A stretch of 64,000 nt of DNA from Guillardia theta CCMP2712 (lineage: Eukaryota > Protista > Cryptophyta), in assembly GCF_000315625.1 (NCBI RefSeq), contig NW_005434666.1:1-64000 (forward strand), read 5' to 3'. Made by a program: the position numbers and the translations under genes. Numbering within the stretch: the first letter of the stretch is position 1; each line of letters begins with the position of its first letter. The notes under the pieces are model-generated. The model ran no database searches. It was given only the letters and a program-made list of their open reading frames with translations, and was not told the origin of the DNA. Shown here in pieces: positions 308 to 44,364 of the stretch.

Positions 308-3224
308 CCTTTAAACGACAAAATTTTTTGTCTGGAGTGTAGCAATTTCGGCAGTTTCAGAGCTGCAAGTGCCTCATGAAGGGGGTGGGGGGTAGTTGAA
401 TGAGAGATAGTACGGGGTTGATGCGCTAGTCTAATCCTGATATAAGATGGGTGGGGGTCATTTTGGAGTAGGTGGGGGTTTGCAATAATCGCAATGGTGG
501 CGCGCGCATGCTGGCGAGGAGAGCATCCAGTTCCACAGTAGCAGCACCTCGTCAGCCTGCAGAACATCTCCACGTATTGAGAGATAGATTTTATATCAAT
601 TTCTAATCTAAGGTGAATGATATCTTGATTGTGTGAGGTACAACATTCTGTTTTCACCATTTTTTGAGCCGCCAACCGCTGTAGATTTACATTTAGAAGT
701 ACCATGCCGGATGATTTCGGTGTGCTGACTCGCTTCTGAAGCAAAGTTGATCTTGTACAAATGTTACTAAAAAGGATTCATTTCTTAGCTATATTATCTT
801 ATACCATTTCACCGATGTTGATCTTGGTGCTCCTGTAAGCAATTTCTACGCGACGCTGGTCCGCAGATACCAAATGGTCTCTTAAGAGGATCATTCTTGC
901 TACAAAGTGAACAACAGAAGGTAGTGTACAAACCCTTTCCATTGCCACTTCGACAAATCCTGCATCTCACTCTTTTCAACCGCTGTGCATTACCCACTTG
1001 TGTACTTTGTTGGATGAAAGATCGAGCGTGGTCGTCAACAAGTATCAGTTGGTGATCATCCAACGGCGCTTCTGCTTCATGACTGTCATCATCCACGCTG
1101 GTATCTGTGCTATCCTGTCCTCCTCTTCTTGGAATCGATGAATCTGGACAACCTTCGTACGAATTTCTCATCAATGCTTTGGCCAGGGCGTCAGTAAACA
1201 TCAGATGTTTGGGGACTTCTTTCGGTGGCATTCCAATACGGAAAATCTTGTATGCATCCACTTCAATGAACCCAAGTATCGTACAGAACATTCTGAATCT
1301 CCAGTCATGAGTTCCAACTTTTTCTTCCAGTCCCAGTCCACTCTGTCTCAGGTGATTGTGCACATCGATCACAGATGCTCCGTTGAAATATGACTTGATC
1401 ATGGCCGTTCTTGGCGTTGACAGTGTTTTTTTCTTCCCTGTTCCTGGCTGACCCTTCCGTCGATACCGAATTTTCAAATGGGGATCGGTTTCTTCTGTTG
1501 TATTCCATGTCGAAATGAGAAGTTTTCTTGGGGTATCAGGCCTGCCAGGTTCATTCCATGCATGCCCGAAAATGAACATTTCCCTGCCATTATGCTGCCA
1601 TGAAGTTGATACGGTCTTCGTAGCACCTCTTACTGCACTAGCCTCCCATGCATCCTTGTTCAGATATTGTTTTGGAAAGCCTCTGTGACATTGTTTGACC
1701 AATCCTGTGAAAAAAGTGTTCCTCTCCAACAGAGCTTGTGCAGTTGACACTGACGCAAAAGCGGAATCTGCGTAAAGAATGTGACCCTGGTTGAAGTAAG
1801 GCTTCATCAATCTGAGAACCCATGATGTATGCTTCGGATATTGATCAGTAAATTCTTGATTCTCCATCACTCGTTTGCCTTCTTGTAACTCCAGCTGCAA
1901 CATAATTCCGTAGGTACACTCTGCAATGTTCTTGTACTCACTGCCAATACCTTGTGGTTTTCGGGCAATTTTTGTTAGAAATGGGATTCCATCATCAACG
2001 TCCTTCATACAAAGTCAGTCACACAAATTTCCAACACAATATGGTAGGATACCTCAGCAACTGGTATCCATTTACCCATGCTTTCATCCAAAATGAATTC
2101 AGATCCAGGACGAATTGTTTGCAATCTGTTCGCATTGAAAGCGTGTATAAGGGGTCGGATACAATTAAAAGCATTGTCTGTAATGTATGCATACGGAGGC
2201 CCTGAGCGAATTTTATGTGCTTTCGCCATTGTTCGAATCGACAACGACTGACTCCAAAGCGCTTACTACGGACTGGCAGAGTCGTAATCGCTGCCCGGTG
2301 GCATTGTAGAGTTCTCATGAACGGAGCACACCCATGAACTCAGCCGAAGCCATTCATGTACAGTGAACGGTTTCACATTTGCTGGCAAAGAATTGTTCGT
2401 CCAGAGCAAACAACATCCAGTTTCGTCACAATCTCCGAAAAAATACTTCCACGGAAGCAGAAATTTCCAGCAATCAAATGGAGTTTTCTCGTCAAGGATC
2501 TGCAGAGCTGGTGTCCAGCGAATCACAGTTTTGCGCCGCGATTGCAAATCCACTTGACAGTCGTTGATCTTCTGCAACACCAGTCGGTGATAACTGCCAA
2601 ACGAGGACATTTTCTCCAAAATTGCAATTGATGGTCATAGGCGAAGAGCCTCGGAATCATTTTCATGGTTTGATTCCCCTTGCATAGGGACTCAGGGTCA
2701 TGATGAGACACCCGGTGACTACATCATTAGAGCCAGCGTCATCGGACGCGGCTACATCGCGGGCAGCGGAAACATTGGTAGAATTTTGCAAATTTGGCAT
2801 TTCCCCAGGCAACAATGTGGATCGTAAGGTACTCTCCAAGACGCTAATTTTCATTCTTTCACCAGGCAAGTACCAATCAACCATCCATCTACCATTCCCA
2901 CACTTCGCTATCACCTTTCCAGTTATCGCGACGGAGTTCCAATCGCATCTATGCACGCCCATGAGAATGCTCTTTGCAGGCCTGAAACGGCCAAACATCT
3001 TAGTGACTTTTCACAGTTATCTCCTGTCCTATCTCGACAACGGGTTGGTCGTTTGCAACGCGAATTTCAGCGTTGGAAAGTTCTTCCTCCCCTCTTCCTT
3101 CCCCTGCCATTTTCCCCGCCTTTATGCCCTTCCGAGGGCCAAGGGGGCTGTATGAGGGCTCGAAAAAGGGACTCCCCGGGGAGTCCGGGATTCCCAGGGG
3201 AGGCCGCAGTTTGTCGATTAAAGG
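308..3224 (-). mobile_element. piggyBac-superfamily DNA transposon, full length (2917 bp)
   Basis: Left TIR CCTTTAAACGACAAA (308-322) and right TIR TTTGTCGATTAAAGG (3210-3224), 14/15 match; ATAA on both flanks (304-307, 3225-3228); encodes a piggyBac-type transposase. Confidence 0.9.
809..3110 (-). pseudogene. piggyBac transposase; 5' half frameshifted; one 50-nt intron (2003-2052)
   Basis: DDD-type motifs ILDESM / YADSAFASV / VIDVHNHLR, KPQGIG motif, and a C-terminal Cys-rich domain (CRIC...CCSLC...ICG...CLQEH). The N-terminal part is split across ORFs 2005-2244, 2019-2318, 2266-2619 and 2663-2998, with a candidate ATG at 3110. Confidence 0.85.
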
Positions 3225-14106: not shown

Positions 14107-14540
14107 TGCTCTGTCTGAAACAGGAAAGGCCAGGAAGGAGGTAACTAGGAGGACTCTGGAGCTTTTGTTCTCTTTCTAGAGGAAGCAGGGGACAGGAATA
14201 TGGAGCTGAGGAGATGCGTGTATGTTGAGGATGACGCAAGTTGATACCAACCTGCTGAGGATGTTGCGGGTTGATGTGGGAGGTGCAATCGAATCAGGAG
14301 ATGTGAACCGTACAAAGTTTCAGTTTGTCAACGAAAAAGATTGATATCGCAGCAGACGGCGAAGTCCTCTGGGAGTCGAACTGTGATTTCTCTTCTTTTT
14401 GCGTTCTGCTTTCCCGCATGTGCATCTTTGCTCCTTGTTACGTCTCCTCAAGGGGTCATCCAAGCCCGCCTCCGATTTTGATGAAGTCCCGGAAGTTCGG
14501 CCGGGCCTTGCGGCACTCTAGGCCCGGAGTCACCTGTTGT

Positions 14541-14622
14541 CGCCGTTTGGCCTGTGCGACAGTGTCAGGGTCAAGCCTCCTGATTGTCCTCGTACTGATT
14601 TTTAACTTAACTTTGAGTAAAG
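14541..14622 (-). repeat. Dispersed repeat family R, short copy 1
   Basis: Reverse complement of CTTTACTCAAAGTTAAGTTAAAAATCAGTACGAGGACAATCAGGAGGCTTGACCCTGACACTGTCGCACAGGCCAAACGGCG, shared with copies at 17.7, 27.5, 61.2 and 62.7 kb. Confidence 0.9.
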
Positions 14623-14708
14623 TGCATAGTTGTGCAGGTCGTCGGCCACCCTGCCGAAGTAGTAGTAGTAGTTATGAGTCAAAACTTTCGAGACCTCTGG
14701 CCCCCAAA

Positions 14709-15990
14709 ATGCTGCTTACAGCGAGAGTGGCAAGGAGTGTGGTGTCTTTGGGCATCATAATGGATTTGCTTAGCATGGTAGGATGCTTCTACCTGCATTC
14801 GCCACAAACATTGTTAGGAATCTGCTCTGTGACATCCAGAAGTTGTGTGCAGCCACCCTTTGGTCTCAAGACTGGCAAAATGACAACCCAAAAAGCGAAC
14901 ATGAGAAGGGCAAGATCGACGCTTTATCTAAGCACCCAAAGCGATCCACCTAATGAGCAACAGGTAGAACTAAATCGAAAGGAAAGAAGAAGATTGAACA
15001 GGAAAAATAGGAACAACCAAAGGAATAGGCTTACCGCTGATACACCAATAGGGCTTACCTCTATTGCACGCAAAAAATCCTTATCTCAAAATTTTCTTGT
15101 GGACGATGCAATCATCATGTCCTTGGTGAACTGTGTGGATGATCAGAGTCAAATGGGATGTTGTGTTGTAGAGTTGGGTCCGGGTCTAGGCTCTTTGACA
15201 AAGCATCTGCTTGAGCGATTTCCTCGCATGAAAGCTGTTGAGCTCGATGGCCAAGCTGTCAAGTCCCTTCAGGTGTCTTACCCCAATCTGGATATTACTG
15301 AGCAAAGTCTTTTGGATTTTGATTTCAAAAAACACTACGACGAGAAGGGAGAACGACTCACTGTCATCTCAAACGTTCCATTTGGAATATCAAGTTCCAC
15401 CTTGTACAAGCTGTTGGAAAACTCGGCGTACATTAGACGATCAGTTCTGGTTTTACAGCAAGAAGTCATTGACAGGATAATGTCTGGCCAAACTCAAAGA
15501 AAATACGGCTCGCTTTCAATAGAGCATGTGATTCGTGCAGAAAACATTCGGCAAGAAATGACCATACCGCCTATGGCATTTGAACCCCCTCCAAGACAAA
15601 CCAGAATAGGTGATTGTATTATCGTTCAAGGCTGCATGATTCATTCCTCTTCAAAGGTGTTGTCTCTATTGACTATCAAGAAGAGCTCCCGCTGGAAGAA
15701 TCTGAGATGCGGTAAGATAATGCTGGGTATATCAAGAAGATCAAACACATGCAGGATTCTTCGCTTATGCCTCCAAGCTTCGTTCGAGAAGTAACATTAG
15801 TTTGAGATCTTTTTTTTCACAGTTTTATCAATACGTTTGATTTGAAAAAATAGGAAAGGGGTAACATTACGTGAGAGTTTGCCAAGGAGCAAGGAATTAA
15901 GAAAGGCAAGTTAATCCAAGAAATTACCTGAAACCTGATGATTTGGGCCAGGAGCTCCAAGGACTTGCAGAAATCTGTTTGAGTGACGCA
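14709..15990 (+). CDS. ksgA: rRNA adenine N6,N6-dimethyltransferase (KsgA/Dim1 family), probably plastid-targeted; 3' exons approximate
   Basis: RKKSLSQNFL, VVELGPGLGSLT, AVELD, VISNVPF, LQQEV, YGSLS and AFEPPP motifs; hydrophobic N-terminus followed by VGC-F resembles a bipartite presequence. Confidence 0.9.
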
Positions 15991-16189
15991 AATTGGCTGG
16001 ATAAAAAACCTGCCACCCTGTCTCCTGGAAAGTGGCTGCATATTGCAAGGTGAGTCACATGAGGGCCATTTCACTGTAAACGCCGGTAGGCTGTGAGCTT
16101 GTTTGCGATTCAAGTTGAAGAATTTCCCTGAGAAAGGAAGTATTTAACATTTTTCTTCTTCAGATCTATCTACTCCAGGTCCATGTCGT

Positions 16190-17718
16190 CGCTGAGTGAG
16201 ACCGTCTGAGACCGTCGGACTCTGGGCTCGGATGTCCAACATGCGGGCCCGGGGGACTAGGATCACCCGGCGCTCAGCGGCTGACAGCCGGACTCTAATT
16301 AATGATACTTAGTACGGTCGGATGCATGTTGGAAGACGGGAAGCTGACTCGTCCACTTGTCGCTGTCACGAGTCAGTGCTGTCCCCCCGGCCCGAATAAT
16401 CACTATTAAGTAACTGTAATCATGCGGCACCTCCGACTGACTGACATGTGACAGTCAGATCGGCGGTCGGACTCGCCGGACCCGGCAAGTTACGGTCACG
16501 GTGTGTTAAGTTAGTTCCCGCCACGGTACTAGTCACGGTTATTCAACGGTGGACCAGCACTGTCAGTTCCGGCGGCGGGCCTATAGTGAGGTGACCGTGC
16601 GGCCGCCGGGCCGCCCGGCGGCGGACTCGGTCACCGGGTCTTGCCCCTCGGAACTTCGGAACTTCGGAACTCGGAAACTCAGTAGGCGGCACGGGTAGTA
16701 CCGGGTACATAGTACGCCGGGGGCCGTACGGTAGTACTATCAGTACTACTACCGTACGCCGGGTGTGGGTACCGTACAGCGCGGCCCTCCGAGGCTCGGA
16801 GTACCCGCCCTCGTCACAGTCGGGGAGTCCGATCACGACGGTACCCGGACCGTACTGGTTCGGAACCGTGGCCCACGGTTGAATGGCCAGTCCTGGCACT
16901 GTGTGAGCGGCCGCGCCGCGCCGCGGCCGGGGCACCGCCGCCGCCGGCCCGGCCCGGGCACTGCCCCGGCAGACTGGCCGCGGGCGCGGCCTCCGGGAGC
17001 CTTCACACGGCGGACGATCGCCGCGGGCCGGGGGGGACTCCTGAGACCGGCGTACTAGTAGCGTCGGCAGCGGCCGCGCATCCGGCCGGCGGCGGCCGCA
17101 GCCTGAGTGCGCCGGGCCGCGCGACTACTAGTCATGCATGCGGGAGCCGGGAACCGCTGGCCCGGCGGCGGCCCCCGGACTCAGTGCCAACGCCCCCGGG
17201 CCCGGCCCGGGCGGGCCGCGACGCCCGTGTGGCCCCGCTGAGTCTCCGACTCCCGCGCCGGGCCGGGCCCCCGGGCCCCCCGGCCGGGCCCCGGCGGGCC
17301 GCCCGGGGCCCGGCCCGGCAGTGCGGGGCGGCCGCCTCAGGCCGGCCGTCCGCCGGGCCCCGCCCCGAGGCCCGGGGCAGGCCCGTGGCCGCCAGTGCCA
17401 CTGCCAGTGCCCGGGGCCTGGGCGGGGCCCGTCATGTGCCGCACCGTCACCGTGGCACTGCCAGGCCCCGGCGCCCGGCCGCCCGGCCCGGGCGGCCCCC
17501 GGCGGCGGGGCCCGCCGGGGCCCCCTGACCGTCACGCCGACGACGGTGGCCGCCCGGGCCGCCTGAGGCTCCGGGCCAGTCCCGTCACGGCCGGGCCTTC
17601 GGGCCGGCCCGCCAAGTTGCCAGGCCCGGCCCGCGAGGGCGCATGCGGCCCGTACCGTCCGTACGGTGCTGTCGGAGCCGGTGGCAGGGTGGCACCCTTT
17701 ACGCAAAGTTACTGAGCC
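16190..17718. other. GC-rich fold-back island 1 (non-coding)
   Basis: Very GC-rich stretch built from short palindromes and local inverted repeats (CCGG, GGCC, GTAC, CTGAG/CTCAG, GAGTC); ORFs are only G/P/R/A low-complexity in all frames. Confidence 0.8.
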
Positions 17719-18350
17719 TTAAAAATCAGTACGAGGACAATCAGGAGAGTCGAGGGGCTTGACCCTGACACTGTCGCACAGGCCAAACGGCGGCGAGAAG
17801 AGAAAAGACAGCGAGAACCAACCCCACTGATCCTGCCAACTGCTGTCCCCGGGCCAAACTTAACTGTAACTGATACCTTCACTTAACTGCGCGCTGGACA
17901 ATCCCCCCGCCGGCCCCGCGCCGCCATGCCAGCGATCATCGGATGTCGCGGTGGCCGCCCGGCGCCGCCGAAGGAATGAGACGCATGCCGGGATGCACCC
18001 GCGATGATGGCAGCGTAGGACACTGGGGAGGCCTTGAGCTGACGAAAGATCCTGGACCGGGTCATGCGTTTGCAAGTCGGATCACCTGAGACGTACGGTC
18101 TCAGTGCGCCGAGGCCGAGAGACCATCCGAGCCCAGCGCTGCCGTTTCCTTGTTCGCCGAGCGATCCGCCAGCCACCACAGAAAGCGCAACGCATCGTCC
18201 TGCCGCAAGGCTCAGAGGCCATCATTGCTGGCGATGATGGGAAGAAAGGCCTTTGGCGGGACGTGCTGACAGTGAGCATATGCATTACGATGCCCTCGGA
18301 TCTTCCGCCGCAGTACGGTGCTGCCGCTTGCAGTTTGCTCCGAGCGAGGT
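17719..18350 (+). repeat. Dispersed repeat family R, long copy A
   Basis: Aligns by eye over ~550 bp with 27517-28010; begins with the R head motif. Confidence 0.9.
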
Positions 18351-19143
18351 CCGGTATTCCATCATTGTCAAAAGGTGGCACCAATCAATTTTCTAGTTGA
18401 GTCCCTGCATCGATGGGTCATCATGCTTTTACAGCTATCATCTGACCCTATCAATTGTTACGATGTTGTACCGCTCAATGATATGAGTAAACAATCAATG
18501 GTACATTGCATTGATTGAGTATTCATTCATAATGTCAGGTTATTACAGCCCCCGAGGATAAACAATAATAATACTCCTCCTCCGAGTCCCCGCATATCAC
18601 CCCTGCATTTGCCAGTCTCACCTACCCCCATGACTCCCACCTCACCACCCACCTTCAAGACTTCCTTTGCGCTCGGACATACAAGAGGCTACTGTACCAC
18701 ACTAGGTTTACTCAAAATATCTACAACCCCTGCGGCACGAACCTGATCAAACCATGGTCACTACCCACCTTTTTCTCAGAGTTTGAACCGGTGTGATGAC
18801 CACCTACCCGCCCGCCAGCGTGAAGCAAGCAACGTAGGCTTCTTTGCCATCCCCGCGACCCGGCATCGCAAGAATTTGTGAGAAAGAAGGGCAGTAAGCA
18901 GCATCGTGAGCCCTTTTCATCGGTAATATCTCTCCAGCATACCAGGTGAGAAACATAGCTCGGGGTATCATCATCCTTTCCTCCATCTACCCTTCCTGAA
19001 ACACACGGCCTCTTTTTCGAGCTTGTTACTCCTGGTCCTACACAAGTAACACTGCAAAAAAATAGTTGTCTTACCATTCATAATATCATGAACAAAAAGA
19101 GTTTCTAATTTTGTACTGGTACAGGGAACAAAACTCTGTTGAT

Positions 19144-19995
19144 ATGACAACGAGCTTACCGATCTTGGTTTCAATCCTTCTCACCTCTCTGATATGCCAA
19201 ATTTATTCCTTCACCCCGTCTCCAGTAGAGTGGAACTTGCAGTGTAGAAAACGGGCGAACCCCGATAATCGCTGTGTGAGGACATGCGCGCAAGTTTTAC
19301 CACAAGAAGATAGATTGCATGTTGCAAATGGCGATCAATTGAATTCGGAGGTAGAGGAAAACGCGAACGAAGCTTCGAAGGACATTCAAGCATCGTCACA
19401 GATAATGAGGTGGCTTGGATCCCAATACACAACCAAGAAGACTACAAAGCAGTACCTTGAATCTATTCAGATGGACATCGAGTTGCAGGAAAGTAGAAAA
19501 AGAAGGCCTGACGATTTTGGAGATGAATTGGGTGAAGCAAGCGATGAGAGGCCAACCTTCAAGGTCGCGGGCCTTTCTAATCTCGAGTTGTCGAAGAGAC
19601 AGCGGATCAAGATGGCACTCAGAAATGGAATTTCATACATTGCAAAATCTGCGGGATCAATTCTTAATTTCAGCAAATAGCTGATGGTTTTTGCTGGATG
19701 AAAGTTGTTAGATGCTGCCCTCGTTTTTGTATAGTAATACACATGACTCTTACATGATGTTCGTAACAAACCACAAATGTGGATGCATGATAATGAATTT
19801 CTTCAAGCTCATGAAAAGGGATTTCTGATTCAACAACGATTGCAAGGTATCCCTGAACGAACAGGCCACATCTTTGAGGGACGAGAGGCAGAAATTCTTT
19901 GTTGTAAACACGCAGCATCGCAATTCATCGCATCTTATCATTCCGTTACGATGTGTTCTAATATTTCGAAACCCGCAAAACATGGTACCCATTAA
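19144..19995 (+). CDS. Hypothetical protein with signal peptide + Phe (possible plastid targeting); 3' part approximate
   Basis: MTTSLPILVSILLTSLICQIYS-FTPSP start; ORF runs to 19680 with probable downstream exon(s). Confidence 0.5.
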
Positions 19996-20172
19996 CGATT
20001 TGATAATCTGGCGAAACGCAGGGTTTGAGTCGGGCTTCAGTCGTATATCAAATTATGTTATGTTAGGTTTACTAAGCCAGAAATCAAACACGTAACAAAA
20101 TCACACTTCATCGCCTTGACATGTCTGACGTCGCAATACTTGCTGCCTAAGCTGTCAAGAAACTCTTCCCGG

Positions 20173-21725
20173 TCACCCGGTATGACCGGTAGCTGCACTT
20201 AGGCCGATCTCTGATTGCTGTAGTGGAGAGATAGCAAGAATGTTCTCCCATTCGTAGCGTGATTGCATCATCCGAAGCACCCTCAGGAACTCAAGCCGCA
20301 ATCTACCAATACCGTAAGAGACTTTGAAACCGAGAATCGCACGCACCTCATACACCCTTCTGGTCTGACTGAATGCGCTACATTGTAGGAATCATCCAGC
20401 GGATCCACGATCAGAAGCCTATCCTGATTGGACGTCCTGCATTGTTGATATGCTTCATCTTCATCACCTTCCTTCTGCAAAAGCATCCAAAACTTTATCT
20501 GCTTTGATGTGTCGAATGTCTGCCACGTTGACAGTTAGAAATTAGTCAGAAAAAGCAATTTGAAGATACTTTATATAGGCGGAAGAAAAAAAGATAGAAA
20601 AGAGCCGAGACTGGCTGCATATTGCTTTTATCACTGCTGCTGAAAATAACATCTGGAATGTGTCAACCGGCGGGCTCACGTATGTGATGTATTCTCACCT
20701 CCTGCACCATGCAAAACAAGTGGAGGGAGAACGGGAGGAGAGCATGTTTGCAAAAAGTTGATCATCATTATAAAAAGACCAAATGTGCAGATTCCGCCAG
20801 TACGTGAGCTACAAAGGCCTCTTTGGACAGCCCACAGTTTGACAAGAAACAGCAAGTCAGCAATACGCTTGTCAAAGGCGAGGATAGATCGAAATATGGT
20901 CTTGTGTAGAATTGATGCCTGATTGCAAACGGAGAGGTCTCCATTCATCATGGTTGTCTTGTGCTTGAACAAAACTATGGGCACACGTGCTTTGAAAATT
21001 GGTATGGCTCGGAAATCACCCTCAGTGTTCAAAAGATCAGCGAGTTTTGAAAGTACGATAAGCGAATCATCTTGCGCCGACATATCGAGGTTGAGGACAA
21101 CATCCAAATCACTTCCACGTGTTGCTATCCCGTATGAACTGGAGCCAACCAGGCTTAGAGAGCTGTTGGGGTACAATAGGTCACACAATGATCGTATCCG
21201 CGACTTGACCTCCTCACACTTCTTCTGTTCATCTTCTCCCTTTGAATACTTTGAAACAATCTCAGGTATTCTGAGGTCATATGCCTCAGAGAGCGTAGCA
21301 TTTAGGTCCTTCTGCAGCAAGCAGGGTGCAAACTCTTGCTCAACGATCTCATTCAACCTGATCATTTGTGTCGCTGAAAATTTCTCAGGACAGAGAATTA
21401 TATGCTCAAGAAGAAATCTGGACTCTCCACCAGAATTCTGGTAACTGGAGAATTGAAGTTTCATGGTTTGCAGAATCCGATTACACCGCTGATTCTGCTC
21501 AGTCTTGTCCGTGCAACGCTGAAGGGAAAGTATGTCACAAAGAGTGCGCTTGTAACGTTTGGAAACGTTTCCATGGTGGGTAAAATGCATTCTTGCCTTT
21601 GTTTTTGAACAAGAGTAGGATGCGGTACCCTGGATCAGAACAAGACAATCCAATGCTTTGGATATGAGAAGAAAGGCCACTGGACTTGCTTTTGCGCTAA
21701 CAAAGTGCTGCTTGTAAGCTGACAT
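20173..21725 (-). CDS. Cid1/TUTase-type non-canonical nucleotidyltransferase, multi-exon
   Basis: GSSSYGIATRGSDLDVVL (GS...DxD), ARVPIV, DLS, LVKLWAVQRGL, GG...MMINFLQ...PPVLP, and PAP-associated-like IVDPLDDSYNVA. Confidence 0.88.
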
Positions 21726-22208
21726 GATCAGCTCAGAAGACAGCGGCAGTCAGACTCACACATCGAGAATATGAAAGGAAGTTATCCAGCAGCTGATCAT
21801 CCTCCGTGGGTCCACGAGCAAGCATGACATGCCTGCAAGACTCCCGTCACCTGCGCTTCATTCCCCATCCATGCGACCAGTCGGGGCGTGGCCTCGTAAG
21901 TAATCACTCGGGCAAGCAAAAGGGTAGGAAGGGAGTTGCTGTCTTTTCTTTGTCTTATCGAATGCTCCTAGGCAGGCTTGAAGTCAATTTCAGATTAGGC
22001 GACATGCATGGAGGAAATCAAAACGACTTGAGGCGATGGTGAGAGCGGGCACAGGCCAGGCGGCTGATGGGCAGAGAGGATGGTTCTCGCTTCATCCTGT
22101 TCCTCTTACAACGGAAAGAGCGACGACACGCCTCGACGTCTGCTCGCAAGAACAATAACGACCTGAACAATAACTCTTAACCATTTGAAATCTTTTGGGA
22201 AGGGAGCG

Positions 22209-24484
22209 ATGAGTGGCAAAGACCCTTTGTTTTCTGTTTGCTGCGTCATTTTCCTGATTCAGCTTGCGCGAGGGAATGTAGCGAACATATTCAACCCCAC
22301 TAAGATCAGCTCGTTTGCTACTGTTGGCTTCCACCTAAAGCAGGACACAGCAATGCGCTTCTTGCGTGGACGAGTTGGGGCGTTTGGAGACTTCGACAGC
22401 GACATGTACACTGATATGATCTGGATCTCCCAGGACTCCTCAAAGATTCTTGTCTCGCGTTGGGATCCGAATGACAACAACTTCGAGAACCCAGGAAATC
22501 CTACCTCGCTGCAAGCGATTATTACGTTACCTGCAAATGTTACGGACAAGGCCATCAATATCATTCCAGCTGACTTCAATTATGATGGTAAACTTGACTT
22601 GCTTGTCACAGCAACAGACTCGCTGTCTGGTGAGAGCATTCTACTTCTCTATTTTGGCAACAACCGACATTTCACAAGTAAACCACTCAGGCTTGCCTCT
22701 TCTTTTGGACAAACGTTAGTGCTCGAGGCTAATGGAGATATGAAGCCAGACTTGTTTGGCGAGCAGTACCTTGTAGGAGGAGATGGCAAGGAGTACGTTG
22801 CCAGAGGCTTCTGGCTGAATACACTAAGTTCGTGGCCAGACACATGCCTCAACGGCATCCAGGATGGCGAGGAAGAAGAGATTGACTGCGGTGGTCCTTG
22901 CTTGCCATGCCCCTGTCTAGGCTTTGCGTCGCTTGAGTTGTGTGGCTTCAATTTACATACATCAAGAGATATGACAGACAGTGCTTTATGGCCTCTGTCA
23001 CGGACAAGAGCGCACTCATTCGCAGACATCAATGGTGATTGTCTCGCTGATCTGATCCTGGCCAGTGAGAAAGATTTATCGAGCATGTATGAGGTGTGGA
23101 TCAACCGAGGGCCCAATGGAACTATCCCAAACTTTCTTCCACCGGACCAGGACCTTATGCTCTCGCTTCCAAATGGAGCTGGTTCTGTAACAGTTGCAGA
23201 CGTGAATCGAGATGGAAGCCTTGATCTCGTTTATGCTGCTGTGAAGGAGTGCAATTACAAGCTTGCTGACCGAACGTTACAGCAGCCTTCTTCTCCTTGC
23301 CTAGAAAGCCAACTGCTCGTTGCCTACAACAGTCGGACGGACAAAGATCGCCCATCGGGAGCGCTATGTAGTGGCGCAGCGAAAAACACCATAGGTGAAA
23401 AGAGCAGCACAGGACTTCGCGTAGGGACAGTGGTGATGTCAAATGCAGACTTTGCAGGGTCAAGACTGTTGCATAGCAACGAGATTCTCCCAAACAATGT
23501 TGCAGGAGGACAGGGATTCAGTGTGGTGGAAGACTTTGGAATGGATCCGATGATGGTCCGAGCTGGAGATTATGATCTCGACGGATACGTGGATTTGCTT
23601 CTCCCCCTGAGAGACAGAGATCAACAGAGCCGACTTGCGCTGCTAGTCAACACAGGAGGGGGAAAATCTTTCCATAGGAAAGTCTGCGCTTCAGGTTGCG
23701 ATCTTTCTGATTTGAACAGCATCAAAGGAGTGTACGCGGGCTCGTTCTTCGACCTGAATGAGAAGGGGAACATGGACCTTGTCGTACTCCACGTCGACTC
23801 CTCCATGGACCTCAAAGTAAAAATCCTTCAGAGCAACTTCAACGACCAAGGAAACTTGTTCCTGAAGGCGCAAGGGCTCAATGGTGTATGCCCAGAGTGG
23901 TGCCCTCCTCCAACCCCTTTCCCCGACCCGAAACCTTTCGGAGTCAATCAGCATGGCGTTTCTTTCAAGTACATCATGCAGGTAAGCATCAGCAAGCGCT
24001 CTTCTTTGCTCTTCTGATCTCCAGCTTTAGGATCTCTCCAGTCGCAGGTTGACAGCACAAGCAGCCCAGCTACATCAGAGCAGCCACAACGCACTGAATC
24101 TGCCGTATAGCATGTTCGGGCTTGGGCCAGCCTCCTACTACATCGAGCAGTTCTATATGGGCGTGCCGATGTCTCTGCAGTGGGGCCTAGATAGGAGCTA
24201 CATGAGTTGGATGGGTGTCATCCCCAACTCGCAGCTCGTTGTCTCGCCGACAGACAGAGCAAACGTCGACTACTGGTGGATCCAAGCGTATGGTGAGTGC
24301 GAATGGCATCAAGGGAGGCTGGATAACATTCTTTGCAGTTCACCCATCGGAAGGGATTGTGTATGTTGCTATCGTACTCGCCGTGACGCTTCTCGTGCTT
24401 GCAGCATCGATATGGTTCCTCGAACGACGAGAGAAATACCAAGATGAAATGGAAAAGAAGCTAACGGCACACGCATTCTTGTGA
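22209..24484 (+). CDS. ITFG1: ITFG1/LINKIN (T-cell immunomodulatory protein)-like FG-GAP repeat membrane protein, 3 exons
   Basis: Signal peptide; GAFGDFDSDMYTD and several D-x-N/D-x-DG-x-x-D repeats; PYSMFGLG, IPNSQLVV; C-terminal TM plus ERREKYQDEMEKKLTAHAFL tail. Confidence 0.88.
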
Positions 24485-24899
24485 TACTGATGAGAGAACT
24501 GGGAGGGAGAAAACATTTGTTTACTAATATACACGTCCATAACGTCAACAACATTATTGCATTCGAAACGATGAAACTCTATGAAGATCTTCCATAGGCG
24601 TAACCCCAAAACTTTCGGCATAGATCGCCTCTACAGGTGACCTTTGTGGGCGGTCGAATGAGTGGCCGTGCATCTTCCTCATCACCATCTGCAACCAAGT
24701 AAGAAGAAAGCACTACTATTGAGACAGTATTACATTCGCATAGTACCGCGAGCCACTTGTAGCCTGAGATCTTCTCTTGGATCGCCTCTCGTCATTGACT
24801 ATGAAGCTTTGAGTCGCCAAGAATTGTTTAGGCGATGTGCTTCGCTTGTCAAGAAATGAGCGCGAGTGACTGCTGGAGGGATTGACGTTGTGAACGATA

Positions 24900-25820
24900 T
24901 CAAGGTTCGAGCCCCAAAAGTCCTGGTTCAAAAGTCAACACAACAAAAACCATCAGCTTTCATTTCACCTTATCGAGCGCTACTGATGGAGCGACCATTG
25001 ACTTGGATGAGGACTTTAACAAGTCAGAGCAATGCATCCAGCGCTCTTCTTCTTGTTGTACTAGTTTTGCCAAAAGCTCTGCCTCGTCTCCATCCAATTC
25101 GTTCTCGCGATTGGATGGCCCGGGATAGCTGTTTTGTCGCAAAATCTGCGGCCTTTCCCTTCCCGCAGGTCCGGCATTCATCCCGTATTGTGCAAGCGGG
25201 CTGACTTGATGACCCAGAGGTCCAGGATCAGATGAGATCCGGGCTTTGAATCTGGAATCACTAGAGCCTGAGCTTGACCTAGTGATCTCATTCTGACATT
25301 TCCTACTACCTCTTGTTGATTTTCGTTCCTTTGCGTTGCAAGCTTGAAGCATTGCACGAGCAGACATCGTCATGGTCACTAATCCAAATGCGATCAACGA
25401 AACATAAACAACTGTCTGAGGATTCGACGAGGCACGATTCAGGCGTGTGTCCGATAAAAACGAGTCCCGAGCTCGCTCCATGGAGTATGCGTTCTGACTG
25501 CTTGTGTTCAAGTGCTGAAGAACTAAGTTTGAGCCCTCGAACAATCACAGTGTATGCCTTGTCTTGTCTTTGATCTTGCACCCTTTGTGAACAGCTCTTA
25601 CAGCCCTCTAGTCACCTCCATCGAGACAACTCTGGAAACCTAAGGACTGAAAGCTGCAATACTTGCGATGGATTGAAGACAGATACGATGATAAAGGAAC
25701 CGAAGGCCAGACGAGTAGAGCTTGAGGAAGGAGTCGGACAACAACAGGAGACTGATGGGCGAGGAGAACTGCAAGAGGAATACAGTACCCGCCCTCTGAG
25801 AAAAGGAACACAACAATGAA
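24900..25820 (-). CDS. Hypothetical protein with TM segment, probably multi-exon
   Basis: ORF 24960-25544 (VVYVSLIAFGLVTM) and an upstream hydrophobic ORF 25640-25846. Confidence 0.35.
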
Positions 25821-26233
25821 GAGATCAACTTGGTCGAAGAGGACACGAGGAGGAATTGATACGCACGGGAGATCTCGATAAAGATACCTTGAACCCTGCA
25901 AGTTTGAGCCTGGGGATTTCCGGCTTGGGACTTTTAAAAATCAGTTATTGCAAGATTGAGGCTGGATACGGTAGGGGGTAGGGTAGTCCTTGTACCGGTT
26001 TTTTTCCCGATAAAACAGGACCCCATTTGCAACCAATTCGCAGCACAGAAGGGTGTAACGGTACCGTGATATTTAAATATATTTATCAAAGCTGGTACTA
26101 TACGACCTCCACAGAACGGCAGAAGCGGGAAAGGTCTTGAAGAAGCTTAGTTTGGTCATATCTAAATGCTCCCGTGGTCACCTGCTGACCTCTTTCTCGG
26201 AAGGGGTCGCTGACAGCCACACGAAACTTTAAC

Positions 26234-27360
26234 GTGTTTCAGGAGTTCATAGTTGAATATTCCAACTTAGAGGAATTGATCTCCCGAAATTCGAAATCCT
26301 TTGCCCGTAGATCGACAAAGTCAATTCAATGTTCAATTGCAAATTTGATTTTGCAAACTTTGAACAACATTAGCAGGGGAAAGTACTCGAATGGTTGCGG
26401 AAACATCCGCATGCCCACCGAGAGAAGGGCGGGGACTGTCAAACCACCGGTTGTTTCGACCGAATTTGGAGGGATGATTCTAGGTACTATCGGTTATTTC
26501 CGCTGCTTGCTAGACTGTGATTTTACTACTGGAACTTGGTTGACACAAGCACTCACAGTGATCATGGCATGCGTGCAACAAGCGATGGATCCGCTTGCTA
26601 TTAGCACCATGCAACAGAACTTCGACGATCTCTTTTCTTTTGACATTGACATAGTCGAAGAAAAGATTGACACCATTCTAGGGAGTGATTGGATACAATC
26701 AGTACCTGTCCGAAACAAAGATTCAAGCTGCAAAGCAGAACTCGAGGATGAAAAAGAAGAATATCTCAAGTTGTTTGGTATTCAGAAGGACCTAGACAGC
26801 TACTTGGCCCAAGAAATTTCTGGCAGGAACCATCAGTCTGAAGAAAGCGAAAAGCTTTCAAAATATCTGAACATTTGGTAGCATTTTGATTATTCTTCCC
26901 AAGTCCGTGTTTTCTGAGAGTGGTTCTCTAAATCCTTTTTGTAAAACGCATCCAATTGATTAAAAATCTTCAAAGCATCTATGCATGGAAATGCTTGTGT
27001 TTGTTTCAATCTGATGAAGTTCCCTGCTGAGATTCACTGGGATACTCAGGAATGTTTGTCTCATGCTATCTTAATGAAAAATCATCCTTGTTGGAAATGT
27101 GGCCGACAAACACCGAAACCATCGAAAAGCGGGCAGAGCGGACCATAGCCCTGATGCGATCTGAACATTCCATGCACATCAAGAAGTACTCGAACCCCTG
27201 TGGGTGCAAAGCACCCAAGTCTTCATATGCTGCATCGGGAAATTGCTGGAAAAATCAATTCAACAAGCAACCTGAAGAAACAATAAGTGACCCCAAACAA
27301 GCTTGGCTCAAACTAAACTTGCTGTCCAGGTGCTGAGGATGACAATTCTAGAGTCTGGTC
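26234..27360 (+). other. Unidentified ORF or degraded coding relic adjacent to repeat copy B
   Basis: 215-aa ORF followed by frame-broken segments; weak resemblance to a hAT dimerisation region. Confidence 0.25.
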
Positions 27361-27516
27361 ATGATTCCACATCGTGACTGTGAATGGCTGACTTTCTGTT
27401 CGACTGGTGGATAGTATGACTGTGCGAAACCTTATCACGGGCACAACTTGGCAAATACCGTGGGGCCGTAAGAAGTTCACCTTGCTATGACTCTGCCTCC
27501 TTACTTCAACTTAGGT

Positions 27517-28097
27517 AGAGGAGGCTTAACCCTAACACACAGGCCATACGGCTTGAAGAGAAACGAGGGTGAGAACCAACCCTTACCCTGGACCTTTCCC
27601 CCCGCGCCATGCCGGCGATGTCGCTCAGTGGCCGCCGCCGAAGGAATAAGACGCATACCGGAACGCACCCCGGGCCCGCGACGATGGCAGCGAAAGACAG
27701 GAAGGCCTTGAGCTGATGAAAGATCCTGGACCGGATGCATTTACAAGTCGGATCACCTGAGACGTCTTGCGAGGCCGAGAGACCATCCAGTGCTGCCGTT
27801 ACCTTGTTCGACAGTCGCCGTGCGATCTGCCAGCCACCACAGCCTGCAGCGCAACACACAGAGTCATCCTGCAAGAGTCCATCAGTGCTGGCGATGATGG
27901 GAAGAAAGGCTTTTGGCGGGATGCGCTGAGCATATGCATCACGATGCCCTGCGACTCGGATTTTCCTCTGTGCTGTAATGCTGCTGTTTGCAGTTCGCTC
28001 CCAGCCAGGTTTCGGACATTTCCCGATTATACCAGCCAGTTTGCTCCGAGCCAGGTTTCGGGCATTTTCCACCTATGCCGGTCAGTTTGCTCCGAGC
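27517..28097 (+). repeat. Dispersed repeat family R, long copy B, ending in ~2.5 tandem 46-bp units
   Basis: Homologous to 17750-18350; units resembling CAGTTTGCTCCGAGCCAGGTTTCGG begin at 27991, 28037 and 28083. Confidence 0.9.
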
Positions 28098-29225
28098 GTT
28101 GTTAAAAACTGTGACACGTGGCATGCTGCCATGTTACATGCTACCAAGTCCAGGATCAATCCCTGCCCATCTGCCTCCAGTAGCCGGCCAGGGGCTGCAG
28201 TTGCGGAAGTTCAAACATCCCCTACGTGATGAACATCAGGGCCATGTTGGGGCAAACATTCTTCCTGGTGCCGAGAACGCCTTGCACATGGACGCGGTAT
28301 CTCCCCCCTGAATCTTTCATGGGGGTACTGAGGACGGCATTGTACTTTTAATGCGCATCAGTCCATAACGGGTTGCGGTGCTTGCGGGTTGCCATGTGTG
28401 TCGGGTCCTGCCAGGATGACGGAGAAATCATCCGACGGGTGGCAGTTATGCAGTGCAGCAAGAGGTCAATCGGCAGTCCATGAAGAACTGGTTGCCAGTA
28501 GCAGCCACCAAGCTCATGGCTCCCGGAAGTGCTGCCCACTGCCAGAAAGAATCCTAAGGTTTGGAGGAAGCTTCCATATCTGAGTGCCAGATCGTGTGCG
28601 CAGGGGGAAAATGACTCAGTGAGACAGAAGTTCATTGAACCGGGTGGCCTGGTACTCGGCGAAGTCACAGTGGAGTCTGACAGTAGAGAAAGGGGAACTG
28701 CAGGAGGGATTGAGCCGTGAGCACCCGCTGGGCTGGGATGAACTTCCGTTGAAAGCAAACTGGCAGACGTCCCCAATAAATCAGGCGAGGGGATCATAGC
28801 TATGATCCTCTTCTTCCAGTCGTAGCGCAATGAAGCTCCGCCCCTGCTCCGCCTGCCGGCAGCGGACTCAAGAGCTTCAAGGAGCCAGTAGAGTGGCGGG
28901 GGTCACGTAAAACATTTGTATGGCGTGAGAAATTCCCTGTGACACCATTCATATATATATTAAATTGGAGTTACAACGATTTAAAAAGGATTTTTGCTTC
29001 AAATACTTGCATGAGATAGCTAAAATGTCGTGAAAATAGTAAAAAAGGTACAAATGCTCCCAACAAAATCGGTTTTAGTTGTATGGATTGTCCGTGCTAT
29101 ACAACGAGTGTTTTAAAAAAGAAGGATATGATATTGGGGCCAGGTGCATTTCGACCTCTTGGGTCGGCAATGGCGAGCGCACGAGGAGGGATAGAGTGGA
29201 GTCAAAAACGCCATAAAAACCAAGC

Positions 29226-31299: not shown

Positions 31300-32358
31300 C
31301 TAAAATCCATCCTTTCCATACCCCAACTCTTCGTTGTGGAAGAAGTAGACGATGGCGATCAAGCTTGTGAAAAGTACTGTGCAGAACGCAATCACCTTTC
31401 CATATTGATACCAGAAATTGTCCTCATGCCACAAGTGCGAAAAGTAACCCAAGCCCATGACCATGCCCGCTACAAATCCTCCCATGTGCGCAGACATGTC
31501 AACACCAACAGAGAAGGAAAAGACAAAGATAAAGATGAAAGAAAGCGAAAGTGAGAGAATCAACATCTTCTTCTGCAGATCTCCCAGCTGCCTCCACATA
31601 CCAGTGATGTATGCCACTTGTGCTCCAAACAAGCCGAAGATAGCACCAGAGCATCCAATGGACAGCGCCTGCGGAGCAAACAGCACGGACAAGATATTTC
31701 CGTAAATTCCTGCGCAAACGTAGATAATTGCAATCTGAGCTGCTCCCCACTCACGCTCAAGCTGAATTCCGAACATGCACTGCGTGAAAGCGTTGATGAG
31801 CAAGTGGAAAAGGCCAGCATGTAGCATTATTGGCGTGATAAGGCGCCAATACTCTCCAGCAGCAATCAGAGGAGCAACTTTCCCTCCCATCACTGCCAAG
31901 ACAGGGCTGGGGACATCAAGGATAGCTGACCAGCTGTTGCTGAGCGCCACTTCGATTACGAAGACAAGTACTTGTAACATGGTGATAATTCCGATGAAAG
32001 TCTGTAGCTGCGATAGGTACCATTTCTGACGATTCTCCGAGCATGGGTTCCCGAGGCAGCAAGGACAACACATAGCCATCGGTAGCTGCCAGGGAGATAG
32101 CGATGAAACGGGAACGGTTTCACCACATGCATCTATAAACACTTCACTGGCGCCCACACCGCCCATGCTGTACTGGTCAGGGATGGGAGTATACCCCCCT
32201 GCCGTGGTGTAGTTTCCACCAGCAGCCCCCATTCCACCACCTCCTGCTCCTGCTCCTCCTGCCCATGGGTTTGGCGTGGGGCTGACGAAACTGGCTTGCC
32301 CAGTACCACCAGTTGCTTCCCGCTCTTTGCGGATATCATCCATAGTTCGAATAGGCAT
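31300..32358 (-). CDS. Rhomboid intramembrane serine protease (single exon)
   Basis: GEYWRLITPIMLHAGLFHLLIN, catalytic IGCSGAIFGL and SAHMGGFVAG motifs. Confidence 0.95.
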   Translation of the reverse strand: MPIRTMDDIRKEREATGGTGQASFVSPTPNPWAGGAGAGGGGMGAAGGNYTTAGGYTPIPDQYSMGGVGASEVFIDACGETVPVSSLSPWQLPMAMCCPCCLGNPCSENRQKWYLSQLQTFIGIITMLQVLVFVIEVALSNSWSAILDVPSPVLAVMGGKVAPLIAAGEYWRLITPIMLHAGLFHLLINAFTQCMFGIQLEREWGAAQIAIIYVCAGIYGNILSVLFAPQALSIGCSGAIFGLFGAQVAYITGMWRQLGDLQKKMLILSLSLSFIFIFVFSFSVGVDMSAHMGGFVAGMVMGLGYFSHLWHEDNFWYQYGKVIAFCTVLFTSLIAIVYFFHNEELGYGKDGF

Positions 32359-39379: not shown

Positions 39380-40570
39380 CCTCAGGACTGTTTTAGTTTA
39401 AAAGGCTACCGGGGCTGGTTTCAAGTTTCGTCCGATCAGTATCCGACCCGAGCCCGGCGTGGGCCGGCCAGCCGCGGCCGCCCGGGCCCGGGGGCCCGGT
39501 GATCATCGCCGCGGGGCCGGATTGAACTTCGGCAGCCGCGGCCCGCCGCTGAGGGTCGCCGTCAAGCCCAGGCTTGCCACCGTAGCCCGGGCTTCCGCCG
39601 GGCGGGGGCGACCGTGTGCCACTGTAACAGTGCCAGAAGCAGTCCGCAATCACGGTCCGACTCCGCGACGAGCCGGGCCGCCCGGCGGCCGCCCCGGCCC
39701 GGCCGCGACCGGCGGCCGGGCCGGGCTGGCCGCCGGCCGAGCGCCCTGGCTGCCGGCAGCCGCTCAGGGCCCGAGCTCAGCCAGTCACTGAGTGCAGTGC
39801 CGTCCGATCACCGTCACCGGTGACCGTGGCGCCCGGCCGTCGGACTGACTCAGTGACGCGGCCGCATCATCGGATGCGGCTCCGATCACTGCTGTCACGG
39901 CCACACTGTGACAGGCTAGTGCCGCGGCCGCCGGCGGCTGAGTGCCACCCGGTCCGAGCAGTGCCGTCACCGTGGTGTCGGAGCCCGGCCGCCGTCAGTG
40001 AGTGGCAGTGCCAGCCGGTTGAACACCGTGTCAGCCGAGTGAGCCTGAGTACGACGGTCGGCCCGCGGAGTCGGAGGTGCCCCCGGCCGCGGCGGGGCCG
40101 GGGGCCGCTGGGTCGGACCGTACTGCGAGCGTCACCGCCCGGACCGGGGGCGGCGGCAGGGCCGCCCCGCTGATTTGATTCGACTCAGTAGGACCCCGCA
40201 GCGGCACTCCGACTCGGAGGCTCGGAACTTCAACTGGCCCGCCACTGCCAAAGGCGAGTCAGCTGGTATCTAGCGGCCTAGTACTCACGGTACGGGCGGG
40301 GCGGCCCCCCCCCCCCCCGGGCCCCCTCCCGAGTCACCGGCGGCCAGTCGGCCGCGAGTGACGGTCGGATCGGACCGTCCGGCGGCGATCGGACCGTACT
40401 GCGGCCCGCCGGCCCCGCCGCCGCGCGGGAACCGTACTCACCGTCCAACGGTTAAAAACCGTTCCGGCAGTCAAGCGATGGCAAGTCATTTCCGATCATG
40501 GCAGTGCAGGCACCGTCGGACGGGGCGCTGCACAGTGACTGACGGCGTTGATGCCATGCTTGATCACTGA
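39380..40570. other. GC-rich fold-back island 2
   Basis: Same palindromic motif vocabulary as island 1; intergenic between divergent genes. Confidence 0.8.
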
Positions 40571-42400: not shown

Positions 42401-43299
42401 GGCGATTTCATTGAGGCCGCCGACAAGTGCAACGGGAGGAAATGTGCTGGGCCCGTCCTACCGCCATGTCAAATGCGGAAGAGGAGATGGCGTGATCATA
42501 ACAAGTTCGCTCTCTGCTGGCAGAGAGCACAGGATGCGCGCAAGCATCAACGTCCCCACGTCCAGCATCCAACTTACACCCCGGCGAGCGAGGACAGCAG
42601 CGAGCGCCGAGAGGGAGAGCTTCGTGCAGCAGTGGACCTTGGGGCACGATAACGCCGACAGAGACTCTCTACTCCCTCCTGCTCCCCCACTCTCCAACGA
42701 TGTTCTCTCTGCCCAGAGCTGCACGCACAGGAAGTACCTTTTCGTACGCGATACTGCCACCGCAGGAACCGACGATCCTCAACTGACTAGTCGTAGCCTG
42801 CTCGTGGTACGGAGGAAGAACTCCTTGCTCGGCTCTGGAATCGTCCCAAGGAACCCCCTCTTCCTGATGGAGATCGGCAGGCACATGGAGGAGGATGGGA
42901 CATCAGCTCGAGCTGGCTCCTTCCCCACCTTCACGGCGATAGTCTGCCTCCGACCCAGCTCCAGCGCACGTCAGGGCTGAGGGAGAAGAGAAGGCGCACT
43001 GGGGATCCGCTCTGCCATCCAAAGTTTTCCCGCTGACGTACAGGAGCCCAGGGCCCAAAGACAAGGGCAGGAGACGCCTGAGAGCGGCAGATGAGGTAAG
43101 AACTTGAACACGCGGCAACCTCCTGGCCCCTTCCTCGTCTCCTCCTCAGCCACCTCACCGTTTTCTCTCTCTGTCCAGTGTCTCTGTATCCCGCTGTCCA
43201 GTGCCACTCCCGTCCCTTTGCCTTACTTCCGAGCAGCCTGCCGTTCTCGGGCCCTTACGATGATCTCGATCTTGCTCCTCGAGTCGTACAAGCTAAGTA

Positions 43300-44185
43300 G
43301 TACGGTAGCTGCGCGTGACTAATGTATCCTCTGCCCGGGTGACTGTCAAGTCTCCCCGGCGTCCCGAGTCACTGTGAGGCTCCGTCGGCTGAGCCGCGGC
43401 GCGGCGGGCCTCAATGCCAGGCTCAGTGTTCAACTTCTGGCGGCCCATGGTCCGGCTCTCCGCCGCCGAAAGCCGACTCGGCCGCCGCCGCCGCCGCCGG
43501 GTACCGACTCGGACCGGACAGTGCCACCGTGGCACGACGGTGGCGTGGCTCGCGGCGGCCCGGCGCCTGGCACACTCCCGCTCGGACCCACCGGGCCGGT
43601 CACCCGCCGGATCGGCGGACCCCGGGCCCGGCGTGACCGTCGCCGCCGGGCCGCCGGGGGGCCCGGCGCCGGCCCAGCCCGGGCACCGTCCTGGGGCTGA
43701 GGCCGCGCCCCCCGGGAGGCTCGGACTCAACTTGTACGGTACGCCGTGACCGTACCGGCGCCGGGTCAGCGCCGGGCCCCGGTCCGAAGTTCCGACTGAG
43801 TCCCACGGCGCGAGTCCCTCCCGGCGCTCGGAGTCCGGCTGGCCCGGCTCACGGCTGAACTAGTGACTTTCAACTTCCGCCTTGCCGGAGGCTGAACTTG
43901 ACCCGGCCGGGCGGCGCGTCCGAGTCGGAACCGTGCCACGGTGGCCGCACCGTAAGTGAGTAGCCCGGCTAGTACTACTGAGGCTGCCAGGGACTCGCCG
44001 GACTGAGCGGGCGGCGGGCCATGGCGAGTTCAACCGGCTGCCTGCACGGTCGCGCCGCAGCCCGGGCCGGGCCGGGCGGGAGGGCCGCCCGGCTGTGTGG
44101 CTCGGCCGGGCCGTGCGGCGGGCCGCGGGCGCCGCGGCCGGGCGGGACCCGGCCGGGCCGGGAGTTGATCCGAAGTTGATCACTA
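43300..44185. other. GC-rich fold-back island 3
   Basis: Same composition and motifs as islands 1 and 2. Confidence 0.8.
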
Positions 44186-44364
44186 AGGTTTTACAGTGAG
44201 ATTCAAAAAAAAAGGCGTGGAAGGAAAACGTTCCACAAGGAGAGGATAGACAGGAGAGGACGATGGATTGCGAAGTGAGACCGCAGTGACATCATGAAGC
44301 AAAAAAGAGCAGGAAACTCACAAGAGCACATCTCATCCCACTGACAACAAGCGTCTTGTGGAGT

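Follow-up and report, generated by a model that had tools for sequence, protein, structure and literature searches.

Short insertions with a C apex in copies of a LINE-like repeat of Guillardia theta, and their signature in GC islands

Short inverted copies at a junction, often with kept target duplications and sealed by host joining, are known as P nucleotides and as the excision footprints of RAG, Transib, hAT and MULE elements (PMC5499845, PMC2175297). We analysed insertions of a similar look in a 64,000-nucleotide stretch of Guillardia theta CCMP2712 (contig NW_005434666.1, positions 1 to 64,000; "the window" below). They occur in two copies, A and B, of a repeat (repeat R) that probably belongs to a long interspersed nuclear element (LINE), and their signature recurs in GC-rich islands of the same DNA. 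The insertions share a grammar: 0-4 nt of the site are duplicated, and the filler is a C followed by the neighbouring 2-5 nt as reverse complement, on one strand or the other. Hairpin-forming DDE transposases leave palindromes in register 0 (no unpaired base) or an apex complementary to the flank, whereas here the pairing is in register +1 (one unpaired base) and the apex is constantly C. Their target duplication is fixed at 5, 8 or 8-9 bp, in contrast to the 0-4 nt seen here. Their footprints lie at former element sites; here no site preference and no element was found among about 50 copies of the repeat.

End joining by polymerase theta also makes inverted fillers copied from the flank, runs through repeated cycles of synthesis and contributes to natural indels (PMC4912351, PMC4490562, PMC5068794). 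However, it typically deletes sequence and uses microhomology, while the net outcome here is insertion (6:1; 151 insertions versus 24 deletions). Its templates lie at variable distances, with loops of several original bases, unlike the one-base apex of added C described here. Nor was its local templating seen in our set, since inverted templates within ±30 nt of the insertions were not in excess (28 versus 27.8±4.3). Short-range template switches and quasi-palindrome mutations make or perfect adjacent short inverted repeats in clustered complex changes on either strand, as here (PMC5453318, PMC7954356, PMC3820800). They mostly replace sequence and have no constant extra base, in contrast to the net insertion and constant C of the present events, and a concentration in growing GC islands has not been reported for them.

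De novo duplications of 2-4 bp arise from filled-in staggered breaks of the topoisomerase II type that are joined by non-homologous end joining (NHEJ). These tandem duplications resemble ours in being short and without site specificity, but they lack the filler, the C apex and the inverted copy, all three of which are present here. The intergenic DNA of green-algal organelles is likewise swollen by short palindromes, with indels in or beside them, and error-prone break repair rather than transposition was proposed as the cause (PMC7043297). That case is organellar, has stems of 8-13 nt with 3-nt loops and whole palindromes gained or lost, and the polarity of its indels is not known. In contrast, the DNA studied here appears to be nuclear, because spliced genes lie nearby, and its events are 3-9 bp long, polarised and built on a single C apex. 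Such a C-apex end-processing chemistry is not among the described signatures of repair or transposition.

Copies of a LINE-like repeat and their private insertions

Repeat R, which is common to A and B, has at least 44 matching places in the assembly (87 Mb, 669 contigs), and its young copies are 97-99% alike. One 2.6-kb copy (L031:578-3214, minus strand) carries an open reading frame (ORF) of 825 amino acids (L031:730-3207, minus strand) with a reverse transcriptase domain (RVT_1, E 3e-8; 34 bits, with the cut-off at 29.6). This copy showed no terminal repeats, and no full-length copy was among those recovered. The copies have a common 3' end (starting at consensus 1-73) and a variable 5' truncation (ending at 423 to >2060). 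Because of the domain and of this pattern of one common and one variably truncated end, repeat R is predicted to be the 3' coding part and 3' untranslated region of a LINE-like retrotransposon on the minus strand of the window. A and B would then be old, 5'-truncated insertions of it. The earlier note on this DNA had put both copies in the right places but had drawn them too short (17880-18350 and 27590-27990); the full extents are listed in Table 1.

Consensuses were built from 17 and from 10 young copies, and about 50 copies were aligned against them. The polarised set comprised 149 insertions, all from this single repeat family. The length differences between A and B are almost all private insertions and not losses from a longer ancestor. 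The earlier note had proposed that each copy carries its own indels, with a few bases of the site duplicated and then copied in inverted form as in a hairpin, and that the process recurs at the same loci; the alignment bore this out. Copy A has one scar per ~35-40 bp. Copy B carries 24 insertions (101 bp), 7 one-base deletions and 90 substitutions (9-12%, mostly transitions).

The insertion excess recurs in at least 10 further copies on other contigs, for example with substitutions/insertions of 13/18 in L056, 14/14 in L060, 14/13 in L059, 9/12 in L055 and 6/8 in L058. Taken together, 14 insertion-rich alignments (13 copies, B being split in two) contained 151 insertions (683 bp), 24 deletions (82 bp) and 267 substitutions. 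Copies L027, L028, L029, L030 and L061, which are long, old and 5-10% diverged, had only 21 insertions and 27 deletions against 597 substitutions. This ~16-fold gap in insertions per substitution indicates that the insertion load is not a simple clock. Two young short copies, L006 and L007, have no insertion at all.

Contigs from the runs of two other studies (X3, X5) were identical to A over 17792-18022 and 18065-18270, which span several of its private insertions, and a DNA run (X1) matched the neighbouring GC island exactly over 16000-17309. Since contigs from independent runs agree exactly with A and the adjoining island, the insertions of A are not assembly artefacts. The runs that match copy A (17792-18270) are probably RNA, and the GC island is without such cover; copy A may be transcribed, perhaps within the neighbouring gene, whose spliced exons start near 18820 (intron 18942-19122).

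A non-LINE repeat pair was also compared (L005:2020-2833 versus L032:4076-4862). The two copies differ by 5 substitutions, and one of them has 6 extra segments (29 bp). Two of the six segments repeat nearby sequence in inverted orientation, with loops of 3-4 nt, and the insertion-rich member adjoins a young, insertion-free LINE copy. In addition, the heavily scrambled LINE copy at L058:1-320 (copy L040, contig C93) contains a 31-bp unit of original sequence and GTAC/CCGTAC-rich filler in 3 tandem repeats. In the same copy, 20 bp of neighbouring element sequence are duplicated perfectly in inverted orientation, 36 nt away. These structures suggest that the process also yields larger tandem and fold-back duplications. 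A separate 394-bp repeat was found at L026:1064-1457 and L002:2100-2488 (98.7% likeness). In L026 it interrupts a LINE copy near consensus position 109, where AAT may have been duplicated, and in L002 it lies just past a LINE 3' end.

Form of the insertions

Each event was left-normalised and written as L' X F X R'', with X for the duplicated site and F for the filler. The mean slide-ability of the insertions was 1.72 versus 0.81±0.09 in the null, and 36 events could slide by at least 3 nt (11±2.8 expected). The earlier note had suggested a 3-bp duplication. Our counts do not agree with a fixed length: duplications of 0, 1, 2, 3 and 4 nt occurred in 51, 36, 23, 14 and 10 events, so that 38% had none, and there was no mode at 3, 5 or 8. 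X was at least 2 nt long in 48 of the 135 events with filler, and 14 further events were pure duplications without filler.

The filler began with C in 79 of 135 events and ended with G in 68. To obtain a null, insertions were simulated and passed through the same alignment pipeline, which gave 34% and 27%; against this, the C-start and G-end biases were significant in the first 112 events (p = 4e-7 and 3e-8). Insertions of 1-2 bp were mostly C (15) or CG (6).

The fillers had been described in the earlier note as inverted local copies. Generic hairpin tests gave no more than chance (29 stems of at least 4 nt with a loop of 0-3 nt at any position, versus 25±4 in shuffles), and the claim stands in one register only. 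When the filler was paired with its flank in register +1, 95 stems of at least 2 nt were found versus 22.4±4.8 expected, and 23 of at least 3 nt versus 4.0±2.0. No excess was present in register 0 (20 versus 19.0±3.8) or register 2 (12 versus 10.0). The unpaired apex base was C in 22 of the 23 cases. Relative to the orientation of the element, 43 events were of the left type, 37 of the right type and 16 of both. When the rule of C plus inverted flank was applied to the 135 fillers, 41 were accounted for fully, 23 partly and 71 not at all. Direct templates within ±30 nt were slightly raised, only owing to the duplication. Within ±1.5 kb no template signal was seen, with controls that were confounded by LINE copies in other loci.

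All of the insertions named in the earlier note are present in the sequence (Table 1). One of them, given there as GCC+CGGC+GCC at 17957-17966, is better read with the longer duplication listed in the table. Further examples from the set are TCA/C TGA G/TCA, catc/C GATG/, GTTC/C GAA/GTTC and GAA/C TTTC/GAA (slashes bound the filler). The events were evenly spread along the element, with 59 close pairs (within 2 nt) versus 58±8 expected. Recurrent insertion sites were therefore rejected, as the apparent recurrence came from high density alone.

Several of the fillers outside the rule have common motifs, namely ACGGT/ACCGT (4 versus 0.4 expected) and AGTGA/TCACT (4 versus 0.2). Both motifs are frequent in the GC island next to copy A as well (motif places 16480-16500, 17440-17460 and 17650-17670); ACCGT ranks with its commonest 5-mers, and CACGGTG/CACCGTG is present there. 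The sequence GTACGGTGCTG is found both in this island (~17655) and in copy A, where it occupies a modified site (~18312).

C/G-centred palindromes and GC islands

The rule predicts odd palindromes centred on C or G, which can be counted without any alignment. We used a dinucleotide-preserving null with tandem repeats masked. The window contained 843 C/G-centred odd palindromes with 3-nt arms versus 571±23 expected, and 281 with 4-nt arms versus 163±12. Even palindromes, A/T-centred odd palindromes and those with a 2-nt loop stayed at 0.92-1.08 of expectation. In 186 kb from >40 other contigs, C-centred palindromes numbered 396 versus 208 and G-centred ones 405 versus 198, with A at 0.82x and T at 1.12x. 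The excess in the window and the other contigs was thus 1.5-2 times expectation (z ~10-17). It was present in every GC class >45% and climbed with GC.

The process is not site-specific, and it is strongly regional: 80% of the palindrome excess of the window was confined to 8 kb, mainly GC islands. Four ordinary genes near the finding (Table 1) all lacked it. The 48.5-49.0 kb bin, which had looked hot, was rejected, because it is a (GGTCATGAT)n tandem repeat; this microsatellite has ~9 units at window 48630-48700. Small, nascent clusters of the CCGGGCC type lie at 48340-48350 and 48415-48450, in AT-rich DNA. No correlation was found between the "cryptic simplicity" of the flanks and the insertion load.

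The island adjoining copy A was then reduced by a peel-back rule, in which an apex C/G and its new arm were deleted repeatedly (arms of at least 4 nt). From 16400-17700, 20% was gone in 43 steps versus 6±2% in shuffles (z 9.3). The same rule removed 17% versus 5% from 39450-40350 and 11% versus 5% from 43300-44100. Peel-back rules with an A/T apex or even palindromes did no better than shuffles, and control regions lost nothing. A forward simulation of the rule from a 60-bp seed of 45% GC reached 1300 bp in 244 events, at 66±6% GC, and 7 of its 8 commonest 6-mers fell in the top 8 of the island. This k-mer match is suggestive and not proof, because GC-only 6-mers are few. These results indicate that the same fold-back process appears to build the GC-rich palindromic islands. 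Repeats in themselves are not the target of the process, because long old LINE copies are almost free of insertions and the non-repeat GC islands are the main substrate.

Table 1. Positions of the repeat copies, insertions, palindrome-rich zones and neighbouring genes in the window
Feature	Position	Strand	Remarks
Copy A of repeat R	17719-18373	-	consensus 4-573; 14 substitutions, 16 private insertions (87 bp), 2 one-base deletions
Copy B, probably an older copy of the LINE-like element	27598-28795	-	consensus 175 to ~1221
CCCC/CGCCGG/CCCC	17904-17917		insertion giving rise to CCGCCGG/GCCGGC
GAT/C ATCG/GAT	17934-17944		type example; 3-nt duplication, then C and reverse complement of CGAT
CGCC/CGG/CGCC	17956-17966		4-nt duplication; C...G filler pairs with both flanks
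GT/acg/GT	18093-18099		copy A
TGA/CAG/TGA	18267-18275		same site in independent copy L059 is TGA/CTCG/TGA
CCC/C GGG/CCC	27668-27677		copy B; C and reverse complement of CCC
TCG/ACAG/TCG	27808-27817		copy B; duplication, filler untemplated
Tandem duplication, 46 bp, within copy B	27991-28082	.	two full units, then a third partial unit
3'-end fragment of the same LINE family	14534-14623	+	orientation opposite to A
LINE 3'-end fragment	61246-61327		within the 61.0-62.0 kb hot zone
GC island adjoining copy A	16400-17700	.	75% GC; saturated with C/G-centred odd palindromes
Hot zone	16.0-18.0 kb		GC island plus start of copy A
Second hot zone and GC island	39450-40500
Third hot zone and GC island	43000-44500
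Hot 500-bp bin	51000-51500		28 C/G-centred palindromes (3-nt arms) versus 9.9 expected
Hot zone	61000-62000		51 versus 13.7 expected
Lesser hot zone	28.5-29.0 kb		within B
Lesser hot zone	3.0-3.5 kb
rRNA adenine dimethylase gene	14325-15794
Terminal uridylyl/poly(A) polymerase-like gene	20676-21725
FG-GAP repeat protein gene	22185-24017
Rhomboid protease gene	31300-32358

About half of the young unscarred LINE copies (L016, L004, L017, L010, L012, L006) lie within 1 kb of DNA rich in C/G palindromes (12-41 per kb), a level reached by ~1/5 of the 2-kb bins of the window. Either the element prefers such zones, or the LINE machinery contributes to them.

Some other features of the window were recorded. 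An ORF of 399 amino acids (809-2008, minus strand) has a piggyBac-type transposase domain (DDE_Tnp_1_7, E 1e-18). At least 23 places in the genome match this piggyBac-like family. Over the first 800 bp the window copy exceeds other copies in length by 30-40 bp, a difference that is unpolarised. Two further candidate repeat families proved to be local segmental duplications. The contig begins (1-274) with a 14-bp tandem repeat of at least 13 units, which may be subtelomeric.

How the insertions may arise

With moderate confidence, we attribute the insertions to a process of break repair in the host genome, regional and biased towards insertion, that hit A and B many times in place. A host process that scrambles repeats by insertion rather than by point mutation was one of the options raised in the earlier note, and it fits the results best. 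In the process that we propose, 0-4 nt of the site would be duplicated at a break, which would correspond to fill-in of a double-strand break that is blunt or has a 5' stagger of up to 4 nt. One or both 3' ends would then gain a C, followed by an inverted copy of their own last 2-5 nt. For this step, the end might turn round after one untemplated C and copy itself, or it might be sealed as a hairpin with a one-base C apex and be re-opened off-centre. The ends would finally be joined, blunt, without loss. With recurrence the sequence would grow and turn GC-rich and palindromic, and copy A would lie at the edge of such an island.

The site is duplicated, C...G fillers can be two-sided and no sequence is lost, which fits a two-ended break with blunt to 4-nt staggered ends that are filled in. 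NHEJ is the putative joining pathway, as short duplications of the overhang type are above the null and the core factors are present: Ku is encoded in the genome, and so is a family X polymerase. The genome also has five family A polymerase loci, which may be of theta or organellar type. Candidates for supplying the C are a REV1-like deoxycytidine monophosphate (dCMP) transferase, a family X or A polymerase, a reverse transcriptase and a hairpin-forming nuclease.

Several points weigh against this explanation. It is from the scars that we infer that the lesions were double-strand breaks, that they were sealed by end joining and that an enzyme added the C. A hairpin with a one-base loop is sterically awkward, and the turn-round step needs an intermediate held by an enzyme. 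The 71 fillers outside the rule make up more than half of the 135, and only one repeat family was polarised. The ~16-fold difference between copies in load per substitution has no account in the proposed process. Over all copies, the palindrome excess of the flanks did not correlate with the insertion load (Spearman -0.03), and the old copy L027 is lightly hit although its flank is hot.

Replication-coupled template switching is an unlikely source, though a coherent one. A stalled strand would gain a C at an abasic or adducted site through a REV1-like enzyme, copy itself or the sister nascent strand, and realign 0-4 nt back. Insertion of dCMP opposite abasic sites is a property of REV1. This would account for the constant C, the adjacent inverted copy, the variable realignment, the lack of site specificity and the occurrence on both strands, and other genomes provide documented cases of short template switches that give rise to inverted copies (PMC5453318, PMC7954356). 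However, the 16 events with the signature at both ends suit a two-ended break better. The junction of the type example is a blunt re-start with a clean 3-nt duplication and not a realignment on microhomology, and concentration in GC islands is not predicted.

Serial transposon visits, the other option of the earlier note, also seem improbable to us. In this reading a cut-and-paste element that has C...G termini and duplicates a short target would insert and excise again and again. Many DNA transposons start with C and end with G. If such an element were cut one base inside its end, the flank would form a hairpin with the terminal C at its apex, and opening and joining would leave the duplication, C, the inverted flank, G and the duplication again. 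This geometry predicts the constant C/G apex, register +1, the strand symmetry and the site duplication. Hairpin formation on flank DNA is established for hAT, Transib, RAG and MULE (PMC5499845), and the genome has weak MULE-domain matches and a multi-copy piggyBac-like transposase. But MULE duplications are 8-9 bp long (PMC5499845), and piggyBac excision is seamless (PMC7351741).

The numbers obtained here do not favour such visits. Duplication lengths fall monotonically from 0 to 4 nt, with none in over a third of the events, the insertions show no target preference, and the scar density of A would require dozens of visits to a 650-bp stretch. No element lies at an equivalent site in the ~50 copies, where the sole 394-bp insertion has ends of the T...A type. 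Cleavage by hAT with a 1-nt offset would give an apex complementary to the flank base. The apex C does not behave as such a complement, since the ancestral next base was G in only 23 of 43 cases, and a hAT-type apex was rejected. No match to Transposase_21 (PF02992, CACTA) or the hAT dimerisation domain (PF05699) was found in the genome, a weak negative from a six-frame search, exon by exon, that did not cover Transib. The earlier note had pointed to hAT, CACTA or RAG-type excision and had proposed a search for full elements at equivalent sites. The lack of a fixed duplication length, of a register 0 excess, of a site preference, of an element at the scars and of a CACTA or hAT domain, together with the constant C apex, makes such footprints unlikely.

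More speculatively, and with a rather low probability, a dedicated nuclear system may break DNA in defined zones and heal it with C-apex fold-back insertions, thereby building and maintaining intergenic GC islands and destroying incoming mobile elements. One candidate is a domesticated hairpin-forming nuclease; another is an enzyme that makes the breaks and is coupled to a dCMP-adding polymerase. Such a system, if real, would represent a novel type of programmed genome shaping or defence by insertion.

It is quite doubtful that the short copies were scarred from birth, by error-prone reverse transcription in which the LINE enzyme, or a repair polymerase on LINE RNA, adds bases, snaps back and re-primes. 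Reverse transcriptases do add untemplated bases and self-prime by snap-back, every insertion-rich copy but B is short (420-700 bp), and insertion load does not follow substitution divergence. Against this, left and right types are balanced in the orientation of the element, and the signature is regional and dominates non-LINE DNA, namely the GC islands. Insertion-free young short copies exist, and the extra segments of the non-LINE repeat lie beside a young LINE copy without any insertion.

GC-rich, low-complexity DNA is hard to assemble and easily misaligned, but an assembly or alignment artefact is hardly credible given the exact contigs of independent studies, a simulated null that yields neither the C...G bias nor the duplications in the same pipeline, the internal controls of registers 0 and 2 and the concurring alignment-free counts, and a selected motif in place of a mutational process is equally far-fetched, because the insertions disrupt the retrotransposon ORF.

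Neutral DNA usually decays by substitutions and small deletions. Parts of this genome grow instead, through stereotyped 3-9 bp insertions at a rate comparable to that of point substitution. The constant C apex and the single register form a precise biochemical fingerprint, which points to one end-processing chemistry. Scoring the signature needs no alignment: in any assembly, C/G-centred odd palindromes can be compared with even ones. Should the GC-rich palindromic islands be built by this same rule, simple iterated mutation would explain a conspicuous genome architecture, and the palindrome-driven expansion of some organelle genomes, itself unexplained, would have a counterpart in a nucleus.

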